DNA of 62,993 nt, the filler included, from Reticulomyxa filosa (taxonomy: Eukaryota; Protista; Foraminifera), in assembly GCA_000512085.1 (NCBI GenBank). It is 9 parts of 9 records of this genome, joined end to end, with 100 filler letters (N's around TTAATTAATTAA, not from the genome) between each part and the next. Parts side by side here need not be neighbours in the genome. Positions count along the whole stretch, not along the records: positions 25,149 to 43,423 come from ASPP01005748.1; 8 more parts are not named here. One strand, given 5' to 3'. Below, one piece after another: positions 27,952 through 43,400 of the stretch. Under the pieces are notes generated by a model. The model was not told the origin of the DNA. It worked only from the letters and a program-made list of their open reading frames with translations, and searched no databases. Positions within the stretch are counted from its first letter, which is position 1. Every line of letters starts with the position of its first letter. The position numbers and the translations under genes are program-made.

Positions 27952-30215
27952 TTACTTAAAAGAGGACAAATACTGGATTTCGCGAAGAAGATTTGCTTTG
28001 GCTTTGTCTTGAAATTTGTTTTGGCAAGCGTTGGTAAAATACAGCAATGGCCGATCCAAAAATTTCTGCAGTACTTCTGCTCTACGAGATTGAAAATAAG
28101 GGGTTGGAACATGACGATACTCCTTGCGTATGTTATTCGCGTATTCATCATAATCTTTTTCTTCAGTTCCTAAAATGCTTAAATCCAAATCCAAAAACCA
28201 TTTCAAAATAGCATCGTCTTTAAACGTTTCATCCGTTGGAATTTCATGTTTAATCGTGGCAAGGATGTAATTTTCTACTGTACTACACAACTCTTTGGAA
28301 AATATCTCTTCTGTTAAAACATGAACAGTTGTCAATACTTCTTAAACATCACATATACATATATATGTATACATAATGTGTGTGTATATAATCATAAATC
28401 ATTAAAAACAAAAAAAACCAGAGAGAAATTGATTCCAATGCTTTGCGAAAAGCAGGAATACTTCAACGCTCAATTTTTCATTATCGGAGCGTTTCGGGTA
28501 GTACACGATGTCATGAAAGAGAATGGACCATTGCAGAGCGAAAAAATCGAGTTTGGTGGAGCGACTAGCGGCGATGATATCTTGGATGTGGAGTTGGTAG
28601 AGACGGAACAAAGAGGCGATATGATGGAGTGTGTGATAATGGCGATGGGGTTGAGAGTACATATGAAAGATGACATCCCACCATTCCGCCAGAGTTCTTT
28701 GAATCTGCTGAGTCACGGATGATTGTTGCAGCTTGGTCGAGGTGTTTGTCCCGCTCGCGTGGTTGTTCATTATCAAATGGAATAACAAACGTTCAAATTG
28801 GTTATGTACAAACGCATAGTCATCGCAATACTTGCGTATCTGAGTGGAGCTTGTTTTTTGTAACGGCACCAGTTGTGGTCCATTTTCTTTTTTAGGTTCT
28901 CTCGTTTCTGTTGTCGCTTTCAATATCTCGCGTTGTTTTTCATCATCCACTTGGACTGGTATTTCTTTCGTCTTTCCTTCGTCTTTCTCCATCGCCTCTC
29001 CCGCATGCTCGACATGCACTACCAAGTCAATCACAACAAGTTGCAATTCATTCAAGTTCATTTCCTTGCGCTTCGCATTCACCATTTCTCCACCTTTTTG
29101 TGTTTCCTTCGATACAATCAAAGCTTGCATTGGAGTTTTTAACGCAGGTCCATACATGTCACGCAATGGTTCAACCTTTTGGTTTATATATAAATAAATA
29201 TAAGTTTGCTGACAAGGTAAAATTCGACTTAATAATGTTTTCCAAAAAAAAAAAAAAAAAAAAAAAAAAGTATACGTGCGTATAGTAATGTTCAATTTTG
29301 GAATAACCTCCACTCGAATATGTGGATTAATGAGTTTGATGAAGGACAGCAACTCCTGTTTTCTGGCTTGAAATGGCAGTACCATATGCAACAGATCTTT
29401 TTTTTTGAGCATGTCATCATCGGTTAGGCCAATGAACAGAGTTTTCTTGGCAAGCAAAGCGCCGATAGTGAGCATGACTTTATGTCCGGAATGCAAGTGA
29501 TCAAAGGTGCCACCAAACACAACCTCATTGAACTGCTCGAGCATTGGCTTTGATGTCGTCGTATCGTCGGAGCGTTCGATGTCCGTCGTTATTGTCATCG
29601 TCTTTGGAGTTGTTATCCGTGCATTTAAACAAGGAAGCAATTCAGACTTCTTTATTTTCTCACCATTATTGTTATTATTATTGTTATTGCTACTTATTGC
29701 TGTGTTGGTAATCGTTGGTATTTGCTCATTCTTTAATGATGTCGGCAATAGGATGATACGACTGTCAAATGTCAACCCGTGATACATATTCATCGTCTTG
29801 TCCATTATATTGTACAGACATGTCAGTGTGTCGATCAACTCTGACAACGTTGAGTCTTGTATACTCACATTTTCAATGTATACGTATAACCCTTTCCATA
29901 CGTATTGTGAACTTTGTCCGATTATTTCTTCAAACCACTTTTTGTCTATCTTGCTCACGTTCCCGGATTCTTCTTTGACACTCAAGGTCACGTATGCCTT
30001 CTCATACTCGTGAATCGCTCTTTGCACCTCTTCTACTATTTCGCTCGGTGTCACTGACTTCAAATATGCTGATAACAAATGGTCATTCAGTCCTAATGTT
30101 GCTGCTTTTCCTTTTTTTTCCCCCAAACATTATATCAATCCCACGCTCTTGTATGCAGAAAAAAACACAAAAAGACTACGCTACTATCGGTCTCAGAGGA
30201 TGATACCGTGGACAT
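27952..30215 (-). CDS. Phosphopantetheine adenylyltransferase (eukaryotic/archaeal-type CoaD) fused to a C-terminal HD-superfamily phosphohydrolase (COG4339-like)
   Basis: PPAT motifs VVFGGTFDHLHSGHKVML, IGLTDDDMLKKK, LRDMYGPA, ALIVSKETQKGGEMVNAKR and KTSSTQIR. HD-domain motifs YSQPHRHYHTLHHI, ILFHDIVYYPKRSDNE, ILATIKH, FLDLDLSILG and YANNIRKEY. Inferred ATG at 30215 with three GT-AG introns. Confidence 0.88.
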
Positions 30216-31660: not shown

Positions 31661-32553
31661 TCAATCAGAAGCAGAGGCAAGTCCTTTGGCAATAGCCAGA
31701 GATTCTTTTAGCATTTCAATTTTTTGAGTGACAACAGTGGGGTCATTGGACAAAGCATCATTAAAAACAAAAACTCGATTGCATGAGTTCCTATCACTTT
31801 TATGTCTATATAAAATAGGCAAAGCACATGAACGACAGTTCATTCGATATTGAATTTCCAAAGCCTCAACAGTTTTTTCAACAGTTGCCTCAGCTGCATT
31901 GTCAAGTTCTTTTTCTTTTGCTTTGTTGTCCCCAGTGTCAGCAGGCACGTGCACCACACATTGTCTGCGAAGCACTTTCACGCCACCTTCGTACAGTCCC
32001 GGTGTTCGAAACACTTGCGTGGATATGTCCACACAATAGCTTTCGTCTTGTTTCCGGATCAGACAATCGAACAGCGACGTCTCCATTACCATTGCGAAGC
32101 GTCCACAATGCGCACACCAATATCTTTCCAAGTATTTATCAGCTACCTCACTGTCAAATGAAGAATAATCGGTTTGGGCAAAGCGGGCATTTTGACGATA
32201 TTGTTCCTTTTTTTTTTTCCCCACGCCCCTTTCTTTTTCGATTCAATCGCAATTTCGGAAGAAATGAATGAATAAATAAAAACCACACTTAACAAATTCC
32301 TTTTCATCTCTCAGTCTTCTTCGGTACTCTAATTTGTCGTGTTGCTCTCGTTCCATCTGTTCCTTGGTTGAACTATTCGGAGCTAATAAGGAAACATTCG
32401 AGGAACCCAGTTGCTGCAAATTTTCTTCGGGAATGTCTGGGTGAAACTCGCTCGACCTCAATGGCCCTTGGGGAACTGTTTCCAATCAGTCGATTAAATT
32501 AATCAATTGAAAAAGACCACGGATGAGCGAGGAAAAAAACACAACTTACGCAT
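31661..32553 (-). CDS. STEEP1: STEEP1/CXorf56 (UPF0428) family protein
   Basis: YWCAHCGRFAMVMETSLFDCLIRKQDESYCVD...KVLRR...LEIQYRMNCRSCALPILYR...VFVFNDAL matches the family pattern. The inferred first coding exon ATGC|gtaagt at 32553 splices in frame to LPQGPLRS. Confidence 0.8.
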
Positions 32554-32907: not shown

Positions 32908-35900
32908 ATGGGCTCGTATTGGCTTATATTGGGATTTGTACTTCATTTTTTCTGTTGGTCGACAAATGGAGACCCTATGACTGAGTCTTTTTTTAGTAAG
33001 TTGACTCGATAGGAATACAACACGACAAAACCTGTTTGTGAGTGAAATGAGAAAACAAATAAACTTGGGAGGGAAAAAACGAAAAACGAAAAATAAAAAA
33101 AACACTGAAACGAAATGAAAGGGGAACTATCCAACACTGGAATTCGCAAATGGTTGGCAAAAAATAAAGTTTTTGAGACGTCGACAATGAAGGCGTTGAG
33201 CCACAAAAAAATTAATGGGGACTTTCTGTTGGATAACCTGGAAAATAACTATGAAGAGCTGACTGAAATAAATGAAAGCGACCGCACAAAACTAAGCGAA
33301 ATTGTGTGTGAAGAAGTTGACTACGAACCATGTTACAAATTTGATAATTTTGACAACGAAGGGGATAATGAAAATGAGAATGAGAGTGAGAATGAAAATG
33401 AGAATGAGAATGAGGGCGATGAAGGAGAAGAAGACGGGGATGATGGTAATGATGAGAAGGAGGAAGATAACAATAAAGACGGCAATAAAGACGGCAATAA
33501 AGACGACAACAAATATTCTGAAGAATTGAAGGAGACTTGTTTGAAAATTTTGAAAAATGAAAAAGGAACCACAGAATACAACTTATGTAAAACTCTCATC
33601 GATATTATTAACCCTCAGACCGAGACACAAGAGCAACCCTCAAATACCGAAAAGAGCGACAAAAAAGGCAGTGGAAATCACAAAAGTAACAAAGATGACA
33701 AAGATAATAAAGATGACAAAGATGATAAAGATGACAGAGATGACAAAGATGACAAAGATGACAAAGATGACAAAGATGATAAAGATGACAAAGATGACGA
33801 AGGTGAAAACGACCAAACCGAAGATACTACAAACAATGATGATACATTTCAGGGAAGTGGAGATGGCAATGACGACGACAAGGACAAGCAGAAGAAACCA
33901 CCGAAAAAAAACAAGGACGAAAAGGTAACACCCAAGTTGTCATTGACTTATAAAAAAGAAACGGTTCAGTCCCACGAGAACAATGGCGTGAAATGGGTTA
34001 ACAAAGTCATTTTCACCATCACCAACGACCCTAAAGTTGGTCTACAAACACAACACTTTTTTTTTTGTTTTTTGGAAATTCATGGACTGTTGTATGTTCA
34101 ATTTTGTTTGAATGAATGAACAAGTAATTCAATGAATATGAGTAAAAAAAAAAAATAATATATATATATATGTATATACATATATATATGTCTTGTCATG
34201 TAAAAAAAAAAAAAAAAAAGTCGAGCGAAACAGAATCATATCAAGTAAAGTGGTGGGTGAAAAGCCACGAAGAGCAGATACTGATGCAACAGTACGACAA
34301 GAACGAACAGAGCGCATTGACAATCACAATATTCCCGGAACTTGCATACGAGTTTGTGATCATCGCGCTCGACAAAGAGCAGAACGAGCTGGAGCTATCC
34401 GCCGTGCAGTCGATAGACACCGGTGCAATGGAAGCCTCCACGCAATTTTGCACGAGCAGTCAGCTGACGATACGTGGCTACGGCAAGGGAAGCGTCAAAA
34501 TCGTAGAAGAAGACTTGCAGTCCGTGGGCGCCTCTAGTCGAATTGGTTGGACTATCAGCTCCGAAGGAAAGTGGACTGTCCTCGGGCCTTTGGCTACCGA
34601 TTGGAATTCTATTGAGGTATTCATTATCTTTTATATACATATGTATGTATATGTATATGTATATGTGTATACGTATATGTACATTTTTATGTCCTGTGAT
34701 ACTTTTTTAAATCTGTATTTCAAATTTGAGAGGGCACTCATTCAAATTTTTTTACTTTAAAAAAAAAAAAAAATGTGGTAACAAAATTTTTATTTGTGTG
34801 TGTGTGTGTGAATTTGTTTTGCACCAAGCATAAACAAATTGCAGAAAAAGTTCGAAATTTAATGTTCGACACGTACAACGTGGCTCGCGCCGAAGTGTCG
34901 CAAAACTGCTTTGTGGACAGCACGGATGAGAACTCGAACACCGGTGGCTCGCAGGCGTGGATGGTTCTGGCGCTGATCGGCATCGGCGTTGGTCTCTATT
35001 TCCTCCACCAAAAAGTGAAGCACGAGGAAGGTGGGATTGGAGGCTTGCTTCGCAATCTCGTCCACAAGTTGAGTGGCGGAGACGCTGTTCCACATAGCAA
35101 CATAAGCCAAAATACCAGTGCGAGAAAGCGCGATTATTCTCGCACGAGCATTAACGACGATGACAACGATGACGATGGTAATGATAGTGGCAATGACGAC
35201 ATTGCTGCGGGCAATCACAGTAATAATCGCAAAGACACTAGTCGCAGAGATGAAGAGGCGTATTCACATCATGGGACTGAACAGCAAGGTCGTAAACCTC
35301 AGCCAAAGGGTCTCTCCATCAAACATACCACAACCGATGATGTGCAACGCAATGTATCTGCAAGACCCAAATTTTCTCGTTCACAGTTTAAAGTGCTTTT
35401 TTTTTTTTCCCCTTTTTTTTTTGTATAGTGTCGTGCATAAACAAAATAATGTGATCAGATCCGCAAGAGAATTTATGAAAGGCGTGCTTCAAGAATTGGG
35501 CTACCCGGCCTTTGCTGCTGAACAATACTTGAAGCTACTGACGGATCACTCCTTGACCACGGTTTCACAGTTGGAAGCGATGGACAAAAAAGACTGGAAA
35601 TCACTCGGCTACACCGACGAAATCATCATTCAAATAACCAAAGAATTGAGCAATCTTGATGAAGTGTCCAAAAAAACAACCCAGAAGACCATCACCGATA
35701 ATTTCGATGACGACTTGCTCTCCATTCGTGATAACCAGTTGAGTGGTAGCAGCATGTCGCCCAAGATAAAAGATACTCGTCTCAAAGATAGTACTTCTGG
35801 CCCTGACAAAAAACAAAAACGAAACACCAAAGATACCGTAGTCAATGTAAATGAGGATCCAACTGGAAATAAAAATAAAGAAAGTTCTGTCGATTTTGAC

Positions 35901-36536: not shown

Positions 36537-38424
36537 ATGAAGCGAAGAAAGCCAGATGATGAATCAACAGATACAAGCCCTTCGAAGAAAATAAAGGCAA
36601 TAGGTAAGCAAGAAATGGAATATATGAGAAAGACAAAACCCAAACAACACAACGACAGCAATAACGAAGACGAAGCATATTTGGCAACACACATTGTATG
36701 CAAACTAGAAACACATGAAGCTGAGGATTGGAAATCACCAGAAGGTGCATTACGGTGGTTATTGCAATCTCCTTTGACAAACAAGGACCTGACAGTGGAG
36801 AAATTTAACAAGGAATTTTTACATGTGAAGCCGCTTTATATTTCACGCGAAAACGCAACGTATTACGAAGAGTTGGGATTTTCATTTGACAACCTGTGTC
36901 AAATCTCAGACAAGCACACGTTTTACTTGGGAGAGCACATAATGTGCAAGAAATACGACAAAGATTCGCATTTGGAATTGTCTCCGTTTGTAGCAAACGA
37001 GAACGGCGAAGAAGCCTTGGACGAGTTGAGCGGGCAAAAGCTGAAGAAGTTGCTTCGAGAGGAAGGGTATACGATCCAAATGCATCACTTGCAACATTAC
37101 AATACAGCCATCCATGAGTTATTGTACCAGTTGGAATGCTATTACAAGGTGCTATTTGGAAGCAACGTATACATCACTAAAAGGGGCACGCAAGGGCTCG
37201 CGCCACATTTTGACGACGTGGACGTATTTGTATTGCAATTGGAAGGAGAAAAAAAATGGCATCTGTTGCAATTGCCACCCTCTCAAGCCAACCCTATTCG
37301 CTCCAGCGAAAACCTTAATTTAGATGAAATTGGAGCTACGAAACTAATGGAATGCGTTTTGAAGCCAGGAGATTTATTATGTTAGTTACAACATATATAT
37401 ACATATATTTATATGTACATATACATATACATGTATGTATATATGTGTATAAGCATGTGTTTTAATTTAATTAATTAGATATGCCTCGAGGTATTATTCA
37501 TTATGCAGAGTGTACGAATGGATCCCATTCGACTCATCTCACAATCTCGAGCCACCAGAACATGAACCGGGGTGCGTTTTTGAGATCGTATTTGATTCGC
37601 ATAGTCGACGCGGCGCTGAAGCATGACCCGTTTTTACGCCAAAATGTCCCGATAAAATATTGGTCTGAAAATATTGGAAGCTTTACTGAAAAACAGCAGC
37701 AATCAGAGAGCAAGTCGTCGAAGGACAGCGATACTGAAACAATGTCCAAACCCAAATTTTGAACATGTTTGATCACTTGAAACAATCTTTTTTGATCACG
37801 ATGCCCTCAGCGACACTGTCGATGAAATGGCCATTGAGTTTACTGCCAGGAGACTTCCACCAGTCAAACTAATCCTAACGGTGAAAACAAAACCGATGCT
37901 GAAGAGGAAGATGAGGACGATGATGAGGACGATGATGAAGATGATGTTGAGTTGGATGAAGAAACAGACGAAATACAATGGATTGGAGAGAACAAATGCC
38001 GTGTGGTGATTGCTCCACAAGCCGATTGGATCCGAGAACCTGAAGAAGATGATGAGCCAGCAAAGAAAGATAACCCAAAAAAAAGGCGAATAATGCGAAT
38101 GACCCCAGTGGACTGTTTGATAATCAGTGTATGCTGATTTATCATTGCTTGAACAACTCAAAACGTGCTCATCAAATTGAGTTCCTTGATCAACCCAAAC
38201 CCAATCCTTTGATGGCGGAACACGTCTTTTTAAGAAAAGTACTTCAAGAGTTAATGGCCAATCAAAACCAGTGGATTCCACTCAAACAATTTATTTTCGA
38301 ACATGCATCCGATCCTGAGTCTACTCGATCAGATGAAGACTCAAAATACTCCATTTTGTTGGAATTTATTGCCGCTTTGATCGGAGAAAAACTTGTTGAA
38401 AAAAGGTCCTTTGCATCATCATAG
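36537..38424 (+). CDS. RIOX1: JmjC ribosomal oxygenase RIOX1/NO66 (RIOX family)
   Basis: GSNVYITKRGTQGLAPHFDDVDVFVLQLEGEKKWHL (HxD), VLKPGDLL-YMPRGIIHYA across an intron at about 37381-37478, HSTHLTIS, DEMAIEFTARRLPP and LIYHCLNNSK. The 3' part has several homopolymer frameshifts. Confidence 0.85.
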
Positions 38425-41322: not shown

Positions 41323-43400
41323 CTACTTTGTGTCAGCAAAATTTCCTTGAGACTCGATATTTGGAGTAATTGGTTCAATTTGAATTTGAATGCCAGTACC
41401 GATTGGAGGGGCATCATTGTCAGGCTCTGGAGGGATGGGTGTGGCAGCTGCGACGCCCTGAGCTTGTGTTGACGCCAAGATATTGTTGACCTCTCTCAAG
41501 TCAAAGATTTTGGGCAGCGGTATCAGCTTCGAGCTGTGATCAACACTGCCAGCAGCCAAGAAATCGCCGTACGGACTAAAGTCCAAGCATCTCACTTCGT
41601 CGAGGAAGTTGATGGATTTATGGAAGTGTTCGTCGATTAAGGGGACCATTTCGTTCACTTCCAGCTCGTTCATCGGCCCGGCTTCTTGTTCGGACGCTAG
41701 ATTTTGATGCGTGCGCACGGACTTTGGATTGCTCGCGTTGTTTGCGGCTTTGGCGCTCATGCTGCGATGGCGGTTCATCGAAAAGCCAGAACGATTGCTA
41801 AAGCTAGAACTTCGTTGAGAAAGCGATGAGCCACGACTGCGAGGAGACGTTTTTGACGTTTTGGCCCTTCATATCATGTCATAATCATATCATAATCATA
41901 TCATATCATATCATATCATATGATAACATCAACAAACAAAAAAGAATTATCAAAATGATAAGTTCACACATAACATATGTAGGATTTGTCCTCACTCAAC
42001 GAAGTAGCAATGATGTTATTATGAATTGTGATAGGCTTTTCATCAGGATGCTCCAAATATTGCAAGTAAATGCATTGATCTCTGCCGCCGCTGGCGACAA
42101 AGCGATTGGACCAATCGATAGCGACGCACAATACGTCGCTGCTGTGCCTTTCGCAGTGTTTGATCTGCTCTCCCGAGACCAAATCCCAGACGCGAACGCT
42201 GTAATCGCTGGAGCCGCTGATGATATACTTGCCCTCATGGTCGAAGCGCAAGCAATTGACGGCGGCGCTATGTCCGCGGAACACACGCAAAATGTCTTTG
42301 TTTTGAATATTGAACAGCTTAATTGTGCCGGCGTACAGACCAGCGGCAACGTATTTACCGTTTGGAGATATGTCCACACATAGCACATCTCCCAAACGGT
42401 CTCCTTCCATCACTTTCAATTTCCAATTTTCTTTTCGACTTGCAATGTCCCACGAATACACATACTTGCCTTGACACCATATCAAGGTCTTGCCGTCGGG
42501 AGAGTACTTTACCTCTTGCACCTGTGCATATGAAACAACAGACAAATATGTACATTTTTTTTTGTCAACTACATGCATTATCACGTGCAACGCAAAAATA
42601 AATACATACATATATATATAAACTTCGTTAGTACGATGTCTTTTTTTTCGACGCATAGTATCGCGGGTATATCGCTTTGGACAATGATCAAGCACAACGC
42701 CATTTCGCCAATTCCAAATCTCAACGCCTTGCCCGCCGACGGCCAAGGCTTCGCCATTGGGCGACCACGCCACGCAATTGATGTTGAAGCGATGGTCGAG
42801 CACTCGCTTTGCTTTCAGCATGTCCCCGACAATGTGCGTGATCAACACCGTTTGATCCCAGCTCCCGGTCGCGACAATGTCTTGAAATGGGTGGAACTTC
42901 ACTGACATGATCTCTCCGTGGTGTCTCCTCTTGAATTCCAAACGATACACAATGCGCCAGTTCCACCACAGTATCCATGGGATCTTTAACAGCACGATTA
43001 TCGCCACCACTGCTGCAATGAAGAATATACCATACTATTTGAACATATACATATAAAAAAAATATATATATATGTATATGTATATATTTTTTATTCAAAG
43101 TTGAACACACTGCAAACGCAAGTCGATTACCGGGAGATTGGTGTGTGGCTTCGCGTGATAGATTTGGGTGAAAAACAAATAGGCCTGCAACACCAGTTGA
43201 GGAAAGACCTCGAAGATGCATTCCACAACAGTGTACGCCAGGAGTTGTGGGTTTTCGTAATTGGGGCCGATAAACACGGACCACGTCTTCTTCAAAGCGA
43301 TCCATACCAAATAAAACGGCATAAACAGTGTGCCCACAAGAATTCCAATTTCCCACATTGAACAAACTGCAATATCACTTGCTTTGTCAATTCGAAAATC
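41323..43400 (-). CDS. XK-related-like multi-TM domain fused to WD40 repeats (5' partial)
   Basis: VVECIFEVFPQLVLQAYLFF resembles the XK-family motif LEAFLESAPQLxLQxY. A further TM helix runs directly into WD40 repeats (HHGEIMSVKFHP..ATGSWDQTV, GHSAAVNCLRFD..SGSSDYSVRVWD, VRCLDFSPYGDFLAAGSVDHS). Confidence 0.75.

Follow-up and report, generated by a model that had tools for sequence, protein, structure and literature searches.

A predicted fusion of phosphopantetheine adenylyltransferase with an HD-superfamily hydrolase in Reticulomyxa filosa, and its recurrence in other lineages

The synthesis of coenzyme A (CoA) is textbook biochemistry; its degradation, its recycling and the control of its pool are only partly mapped. 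In animals, COASY carries phosphopantetheine adenylyltransferase (PPAT), which is the fourth enzyme of this synthesis, and dephospho-CoA kinase (DPCK) in one protein, and enzymes of cofactor pathways are also found in company with hydrolases: YqeK, an HD hydrolase of diadenosine tetraphosphate (Ap4A), goes with NadD, and PANK4 combines a kinase fold with a DUF89 4'-phosphopantetheine phosphatase. Evidence from recurrent fusion has correctly predicted the functions of enzymes before.

Here we describe a gene of the foraminiferan Reticulomyxa filosa (assembly GCA_000512085.1) that lies at positions 27952-30215, on the minus strand, of a 62,993-nucleotide stretch of DNA (the window, by which we mean the whole of that stretch), in a part that comes from record ASPP01005748.1. 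We propose that this one spliced eukaryotic gene would give rise to a bifunctional protein, made up of an N-terminal region that foraminiferal homologues also have, a PPAT, a linker helix and an HD domain of about 200 residues and of the COG4339 type. The gene is one more member of a larger set, and its value lies in the family-wide pattern, in which HD domains of this kind have been fused independently to both types of PPAT.

The gene and its fusion exon

The gene model was read directly from the DNA, with each exon aligned separately to profiles built from homologues, and gives a single gene of at least three exons (Table 1) on a piece of DNA that is eukaryotic and has a guanine-plus-cytosine (GC) content of 30-45%. 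All searches with the window's own protein were made exon by exon or with the uninterrupted open reading frame (ORF) of 574 codons. The fusion itself is seen in exon B, which taken by itself scores 68 bits over positions 81-156 of the PPAT profile and 72.5 bits over positions 6-86 of the HD profile, in agreement with the preliminary description, which had placed the fusion within one uninterrupted exon. Because the junction of the two domains falls inside one exon, it cannot be an artefact of the gene model. On either side of it, the PPAT domain begins near 29544 in exon A, and exon C matches positions 89-198 of the HD profile (124.7 bits, 1.8e-40).

Consistent with this structure, all three exons are collinear in BLASTP with one foraminiferal protein, P0001 of Nonionella stella: exon A aligns with its residues 62-248 (7e-31), exon B with residues 250-445 in one unbroken alignment (3e-35) and exon C with residues 458-570 at 50% identity (1e-32). 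Foraminiferal proteins, at 32-50% identity, are also the closest relatives.

The two introns differ in how they show themselves. Intron 1 is in frame, so that the 574-codon ORF reads straight through it; its GC content compares with 40-44% in the exons on either side (36-44% is the range over the exons), and once it is removed the spacing found in homologues around the DxYGP motif is exactly regained. Intron 2 splits a GAA codon after its first letter, and its removal regains the frame and retains a conserved NE..S..F..FA segment. Three other arrangements were considered and rejected. With GTATTC as the donor of intron 2 the conserved F..FA segment would be lost, and both a GTATAC donor for intron 1 and an intron within an insert rich in glutamate and lysine (E/K-rich) would break the frame. 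The donors of this gene (GTTATT or GTTTTT, at 29307-29302 and 28418-28413 and possibly at 30166-30161, minus strand) are not GTAAGT-like, and the acceptors are AAAAG and AACAG; such intron ends may be typical of the source organism.

Three public sequence runs were listed, all of them DNA runs labelled 'synthetic metagenome'. Two short pieces of this DNA are present at low depth in two of the runs and absent from the third, and the pieces fall outside the introns and outside a run of eight A's (A8) near the start of the gene. We regard the gene and its fusion as almost certainly real.

The start of the protein is where the preliminary description needs amendment: there is indeed a gene over the span that it gave, and the ATG at 30215, where that span ends, is out of frame with the long ORF. 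That ORF is open from 30129 only, and its first in-frame codon is TTG. Joining the ATG at 30215 to it takes an intron of 62-65 nucleotides, from GTTTTT at 30166 to either AAAAG at 30105 or GCAG at 30102, and the predicted start that results, MSTVSS, resembles the MSTNVSS with which Nonionella P0001 begins. Alternatively, the protein could begin at an ATG at 30130, which would come into frame provided that the A8 run just after it has one base too many. The upstream candidate first exon and the ATG at 30130 with an A8 error thus stand as two candidate starts, and the PPAT-HD fusion is unaffected by the choice. The N-terminal region also contains a run of eight asparagine codons, and low complexity of a similar sort, an acidic repeat of the KDD/KDG type, fills an ORF elsewhere on the same piece of DNA.

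Table 1. Positions, in the window, of the gene, its motifs and neighbouring features
Feature	Position	Strand	Description
Candidate first exon	30167-30215	-	ATG 30215-30213; from frame analysis
574-codon ORF	28402-30126	-	long frame
127-codon ORF	27952-28335	-	
Exon A	29308-30126	-	N-terminal conserved region, then first half of PPAT; PPAT profile 2-80, 103.5 bits; Pfam CTP_transf_like
Asparagine run	29666-29689	-	eight asparagine codons
GGTFDHLHSGH	29482-29514	-	HxGH motif of PPAT, exon A
Intron 1	29176-29307	-	132 nucleotides, GTTATT..AAAAG, T-rich, GC 21%, in frame without stop codon
Exon B (fusion exon)	28419-29175	-	second half of PPAT (to ~28807), linker helix, first half of HD
E/K-rich insert	~28858-29019	-	exon B, about 50 residues
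TSSTQIR	28834-28854	-	SSTxIR motif of PPAT, exon B
Linker helix	28774-28824	-	exon B, between PPAT and HD
RHYHTLHH	28621-28644	-	HD, exon B
FHD	28510-28518	-	HD, exon B
Intron 2	28311-28418	-	108 nucleotides, GTTTTT..AACAG, phase 1, GC 22%, in-frame stops inside
Exon C	27955-28310	-	second half of HD; stop codon 27954-27952
ATIKH	28246-28260	-	HD, exon C
FLDLDLSILG	28168-28197	-	HD, exon C
IRKEY	28117-28131	-	HD, exon C
STEEP1-domain protein	31661-32224	-	neighbouring gene, 1.4e-18
Acidic-repeat ORF	33115-34119	+	KDD/KDG-type low complexity
RIOX/NO66-like JmjC_2 hydroxylase exon	36537-37385	+	neighbour, 1.7e-20; identical ORF in ESM Atlas
Multi-repeat WD40 protein	41964-43010	-	neighbouring gene

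The two predicted catalytic domains

Judged from its sequence, the N-terminal domain is a predicted PPAT of the archaeal/eukaryotic type with its catalytic motifs intact. Both motifs of the nucleotidyltransferase fold, (H/T)xGH and ISxTxxR, are present. Pfam recognises CTP_transf_like only in this part of the protein, and the best NCBIfam family on the 574-residue ORF is PRK00777 (archaeal/eukaryotic-type PPAT; COG1019) at 1e-28. The score, 100.3 bits against a cut-off of 104, comes from two stretches and was obtained with the read-through intron still included; exon B alone gives 42.8 bits. Intron-free homologues of the same architecture pass the cut-off of 104 (P0272 with 120 bits, P0067 and P0045 with 106 each), and with these close homologues above it the earlier identification of the domain as a PPAT is supported. 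The E/K-rich insert occupies a variable loop of the PPAT, between the last strand and SSTQIR. It is absent from P0001, is in frame and does not have the composition of an intron, and the length of this loop varies among homologues too.

The HD domain keeps the complete metal-ligand pattern H...HD...D, supplied by RHYH-TL-HH, FHD and LDLD, and all 21 of the columns that are invariant in an alignment of 63 sequences. With the motifs of both domains located, the claim that the HxGH motif and the HD metal ligands are intact is borne out. One of the invariant positions, D123, was taken by direct reading of FLDLDLSILG, the tail of exon B having been placed there by the fragment alignment. Of the 16 nearly invariant positions of the domain, three are changed in the window, which has I for D117, Q for E183 and K for R187.

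A profile made from seven fused HD domains retrieves a very large family: in a library clustered at 50% identity, it matches 16,606 representatives at E<=1e-3, and 4,636 when the threshold is tightened to E<=1e-30. Its members are mostly 200-230 residues long, and the typical standalone protein has about 210-220. Source databases call them 'predicted metal-dependent HD superfamily phosphohydrolase' (IMG) or 'HD domain-containing protein', and from the IMG product name we take the family to be COG4339 / IPR009218. Scans with Pfam and NCBIfam gave no model that matches the HD part of the window. The Pfam HD model (PF01966) matched neither the window pieces nor the homologues' HD domains at E<=1, P0087 alone reaching a sub-threshold 17.3 bits, and Pfam PDEase_I and ACP_PD likewise found nothing in either set. 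A sequence-profile search of the PDB gave weak links to YedJ and BH2835, in which the H, HD and D are aligned.

The family had been described as mostly prokaryotic and as uncharacterised. The first statement holds in part: the ESM Atlas clusters with the HD-domain fold are 88-100% bacterial, and there are many eukaryotic members as well, among them standalone proteins of molluscs (P0048, Babylonia areolata XP_076462765.1, and P0261, Dreissena polymorpha), of the chytrid Synchytrium microbalum (P0052) and of the amoebozoan Amoeba proteus (P0054). The second agrees with our search of the literature for PPAT plus HD, COG4339, IPR009218 and the NMDAR2C label, which found no paper that characterises the family and no account of the fusion; the single mention of IPR009218 is incidental, in a list, as 'HD phosphohydrolase domain'. 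That label belongs to a propagated error: bacterial members (P0197, P0217, P0251 and others) are widely named 'N-methyl-D-aspartate receptor NMDAR2C subunit' in NCBI.

The fold was modelled on a homologue. An AlphaFold2 model of residues 285-485 of P0005, made with the 63-sequence alignment, has a mean predicted local distance difference test score (pLDDT) of 97.8; it supersedes a model from a seven-sequence alignment, which reached 70.6 and gave uninformative Foldseek matches. In VIA-align, the catalytic domains of class I cyclic-nucleotide phosphodiesterases (PDEs; PDE5, PDE9, PDE8, PDE4 and PDE2) come first with Z of 14-15, aligned over 192-200 of the 201 residues at a root-mean-square deviation of 3.5-3.7 A and 11-15% identity. 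They are followed by 2pq7 (Z 12.8), YpgQ (10.5), YedJ (10.3), alarmone hydrolases (about 8) and YqeK (8wmy; 6.9, over 136 residues). Among helical proteins a Z below about 13 may be generic; the PDE matches exceed that value and span the whole domain, and Foldseek gives a probability of 1.00 to PDE2 and PDE4. On the evidence of the homologue's modelled domain, then, the HD domain is predicted to have the all-helical HD/PDEase fold. The H-x3-H spacing within RHYH-TL-HH presumably matches that of the acid/ligand pair of phosphodiesterases such as PDE4. The PDE signature HD-x2-H(-x-G), on the other hand, is absent from the window, which has FHDIVYYP in its place, and for this reason we regard it as a compact enzyme that has the HD/PDEase fold but lies outside the PDE family.

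The order of the domains, PPAT and then HD, is conserved, and so is a helix between them. In P0005 the helix docks on the HD domain in a complex test, where this domain and the segment preceding it scored 0.73 against 0.00 for the best control, a mark attained by 51 of 78 solved complexes and by 2 of 108 mismatched pairs; contact agreement in the three runs was at least 54%, and the pLDDT of the partner at least 88.

Recurrence of the fusion

The PPAT-HD architecture is not peculiar to this genome, and is present in IMG, NCBI and the ESM Atlas under automatic names. Searches for it found the same fusion both in other eukaryotes and in prokaryotes. Used as the query of a word-index search, the ORF brought up proteins that are about 30% identical to it and span 95-97% of the PPAT-plus-HD region. 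Local profile scans of the fetched proteins found a eukaryotic-type PPAT followed by HD in 36 of them; the named sources include two foraminifera, Nonionella stella and Bolivina argentea, and a ciliate, Pseudocohnilembus persalinus (KRX01950.1). In the ESM Atlas, the HD-domain fold lies at the C-terminus of a cluster of 232 eukaryotic proteins, most of them from ciliates and about 538 residues long, and some metagenomic members are already named 'HD superfamily phosphohydrolase/phosphopantetheine ...' by IMG.

The HD domain also occurs with other partners. A triple PPAT-DPCK-HD arrangement is found in the streptophyte alga Spirogloea muscicola (P0010, P0012), in the choanoflagellate Bicosta minor (P0307) and in P0122 and P0186. 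In four representatives (P0089, P0151, P0155 and P0159) the domain is fused N-terminally to an acetyltransferase of the AANAT-like GNAT type, and in one protein, P0055, it follows a HAD phosphatase at the C-terminal end of the fusion.

A second and distinct form of the fusion joins the same HD family to the bacterial type of PPAT. P0286 carries a CoaD (TIGR01510, 166 bits against a cut-off of 103) ahead of the HD domain, and a search with this protein gave well over 100 clusters at 90% identity, of about 365 residues and with 97-100% coverage, from which about 120 proteins were fetched. Their sources are Woesearchaeota, Aenigmarchaeota, Pacearchaeota, Harrisonbacteria, Uhrbacteria, Tepidisphaeraceae (Planctomycetes) and KSB1, and the databases give them no name but 'pantetheine-phosphate adenylyltransferase'. 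Hundreds of prokaryotic entries under that name are predicted to be bifunctional, an annotation to be corrected. The fusions of the DPANN archaea (Woese-, Aenigm- and Pacearchaeota; P0337, P0342, P0348, P0357, P0365, P0429; locus L019:5001-6101) use the bacterial-type CoaD and not the archaeal type of PPAT, and the presence of CoaD-HD in both the DPANN archaea and bacteria of the Candidate Phyla Radiation (CPR) hints at gene transfer between these episymbiont lineages.

The profiles of eukaryotic-type PPAT and bacterial-type CoaD do not match one another's proteins at E<=1e-5. A quick maximum-likelihood tree was built from 127 HD domains. In it, those fused to CoaD form a nearly exclusive group (Shimodaira-Hasegawa approximate likelihood ratio test, SH-aLRT, 92) within the half of the tree that holds standalone bacterial proteins; the other half contains the standalone proteins of eukaryotes together with every eukaryotic-type fusion and the fusions to GNAT and HAD, the split between the halves having a support of only 78. 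Exon C of the window groups with the foraminiferal sequences (support 85). Given two PPAT families without cross-match and a separate group of CoaD-fused HD domains, we conclude that the fusion arose at least twice.

Near the gene in the window lie a STEEP1-domain protein, a JmjC_2 hydroxylase exon and a WD40 protein, none of which is related to CoA metabolism.

Function of the HD domain and comparison with known systems

In the explanation that we favour, the PPAT would catalyse its usual step, in which 4'-phosphopantetheine and adenosine triphosphate (ATP) give dephospho-CoA and pyrophosphate (PPi), and the HD domain would be a compact, all-helical, metal-dependent phospho(di)esterase with the ligand set H-x3-H...HD...D, in which several of the invariant residues (Arg, Tyr, Asn and Glu) could serve to bind an adenine nucleotide that carries phosphate. 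Its substrate would be a CoA-family nucleotide, whether CoA itself, dephospho-CoA or some derivative, of which it would hydrolyse either the 3'-phosphate or a pyrophosphate/phosphodiester bond. The outcome would be that 4'-phosphopantetheine is recycled into the PPAT step, or that the size and quality of the dephospho-CoA/CoA pool are set. Taken as a whole, we hold this explanation to be somewhat better than an even bet.

Its parts differ in strength. That two distinct PPAT families each became fused to it independently speaks for a functional link, and coupling of the HD domain to the CoA pathway is likely. The partners of the domain (the two kinds of PPAT, PPAT-DPCK and the acetyl-CoA-dependent GNATs) all bind dephospho-CoA or CoA, which points to a substrate of the CoA family, a suggestion that we rate as plausible while stopping just short of calling it probable. 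Each single reaction is unlikely when taken separately, be it that of a CoA 3'-phosphatase opposing DPCK, that of a CoA or dephospho-CoA pyrophosphatase, the removal of damaged analogues or an AcpH-like release. More broadly, and tentatively, the COG4339 family, which is found in all three domains of life, may fill a gap in CoA turnover, either as a PDE-like hydrolase that turns CoA, dephospho-CoA or a 4'-phosphopantetheine conjugate into something the fused PPAT can use again or as a CoA 3'-phosphatase that opposes DPCK, with CoaD-HD as a minimal cofactor-salvage module in the genome-reduced DPANN and CPR lineages. The idea that the fusion offers a Rosetta-stone clue to the HD family, raised in the preliminary description, gains greatly in strength from the range of partners, which extends from eukaryotic-type PPAT to bacterial CoaD, PPAT-DPCK and the GNATs. 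The pattern ties a very large orphan family to the PPAT step and narrows its function to a few candidates that can be assayed.

Several points weigh against this explanation. The gene structure has been deduced from DNA and from alignment with homologues. No paper with biochemistry or genetics on any member of the HD family was found in the literature. Most members are standalone and occur in organisms with ordinary CoA pathways, so that the function need not be tied to PPAT everywhere. The neighbourhoods of seven standalone bacterial HD genes and five CoaD-HD genes are variable and contain no conserved CoA gene. (Single neighbours, namely a CoA-transferase, a BcrAD/BadFG ATPase, a TrmFO-like gene and a GNAT, may be there by chance and were not used as evidence.) The likeness of the modelled fold to PDEs would not indicate any substrate. 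Finally, the confident contacts of the first chain in the complex test all involve residues 268-282, which are the linker helix and not the PPAT core; the connector is thus structured, and there is no indication that the active sites meet.

Four other functions have to be weighed. It is unlikely that the HD domain works in the manner of AcpH and would free 4'-phosphopantetheine from holo-carrier proteins for the fused PPAT. AcpH is described as a phosphodiesterase of a non-canonical HD type (Thomas, Rigden and Cronan 2007, cited in PMC8557913) and yields the substrate of PPAT, so that a fusion would couple consecutive steps; the fold of the HD domain is, moreover, phosphodiesterase-like. Set against this, hhalign of the HD family alignment with E. 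coli AcpH gives a probability of 0.13, the Pfam ACP_PD model does not match, no carrier-protein genes lie near the 7 standalone and 5 CoaD-HD genes that were examined, and the GNAT and DPCK fusions would be left unexplained.

These last two kinds of fusion also count against a YqeK-like role, in which the HD domain would clear side-products of adenylylation such as Ap4A, as in NadD-YqeK; the preliminary description proposed this, and also damaged dephospho-CoA as a substrate, and the analysis lent neither proposal support. PPAT and NadD do have the HxGH nucleotidyltransferase fold in common, YqeK, itself an HD protein, appears among the structural neighbours of the model, and a hydrolase joined to an adenylyltransferase fits the pattern. 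However, YqeK stands far below the PDEs and several other HD families in that comparison, where its structural support is the weakest, and no sequence-profile link to it appeared in the Pfam, NCBIfam or PDB searches, so we give this role a low probability.

We consider it equally improbable that the domain serves to pull or protect the PPAT reaction by hydrolysing PPi or a nucleoside polyphosphate in place of a CoA-family molecule. PMC3169398 and PMC12784347 describe the PPAT reaction as reversible. The nucleoside triphosphate (NTP) pyrophosphohydrolase YpgQ is a closer structural neighbour than YqeK, and an archaeal 'PPAT/NTP phosphatase' fusion, PRK01170, is already in NCBIfam. On the other side, we know of no inorganic pyrophosphatase with the HD fold, PPi diffuses freely, so that a fusion would bring little advantage, and the GNAT fusions again go unexplained.

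The fusion might, lastly, serve co-expression or regulation and sensing only, with an HD substrate that is not related to CoA at all, for instance in general nucleotide housekeeping. The thousands of standalone members with their variable genomic contexts are compatible with such a role, and the HAD-HD fusion suggests general phosphate-ester metabolism. Two PPAT families reached independently, together with the PPAT-DPCK and GNAT partners, are however hard to obtain by chance, and the placing of the HD domain, which always lies C-terminal to the CoA enzyme and has a conserved helix docked on it, suggests that the two were built to work together; we see little prospect for this account. That the locus is merely two adjacent genes or the read-through of a pseudogene is extremely improbable. 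The two candidate starts, and public runs that are all of DNA, leave some room for it, but the PPAT and HD domains share one exon without a stop, the exons are collinear with foraminiferal proteins derived from transcriptomes, and all invariant residues are retained.

Returning to the explanation that we favour, a protein that joins a PPAT to a hydrolase of CoA-family nucleotides would be, in its predicted architecture, a variant of the multi-domain CoA enzymes, one that we did not find described in the literature. With COASY it shares a eukaryotic-type PPAT at the head of a multi-domain CoA enzyme, and among its relatives P0010, P0012, P0307 and P0122 are COASY with an HD domain added at the C-terminus. 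Unlike COASY, the window's protein has as its partner a hydrolase and not the next enzyme of the biosynthesis, and Pfam found no CoaE/DPCK domain in the window ORFs. NadD with YqeK, and PANK4, likewise pair a transferase or kinase of a cofactor pathway with a hydrolase, but YqeK is structurally distant (Z 6.9), DUF89 is an unrelated fold and COG4339 occurs in neither. AcpH is described as an HD-superfamily phosphodiesterase of 4'-phosphopantetheine metabolism whose product PPAT uses, whereas the hhalign comparison detects no sequence kinship with it. The catalytic domain of class I PDEs is the best structural match to the homologue's model and has the same H-x3-H...HD...D metal site, in a domain of about 270-330 residues compared with about 200 here and with the HD-x2-H signature that the window lacks.

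By profile match and by its invariant positions, the C-terminal domain of the window's protein is a full member of the COG4339-type family; it differs from the typical members, which are standalone and mostly bacterial, in being fused and in being spread over two exons. The CoaD-HD proteins of DPANN, CPR, Planctomycetes and KSB1 have the same HD family, in the same order and at the same enzymatic step as the window's protein, but their PPAT belongs to the TIGR01510 family and that of the window to PRK00777, and their HD domains group apart in the tree at the SH-aLRT of 92 given above.

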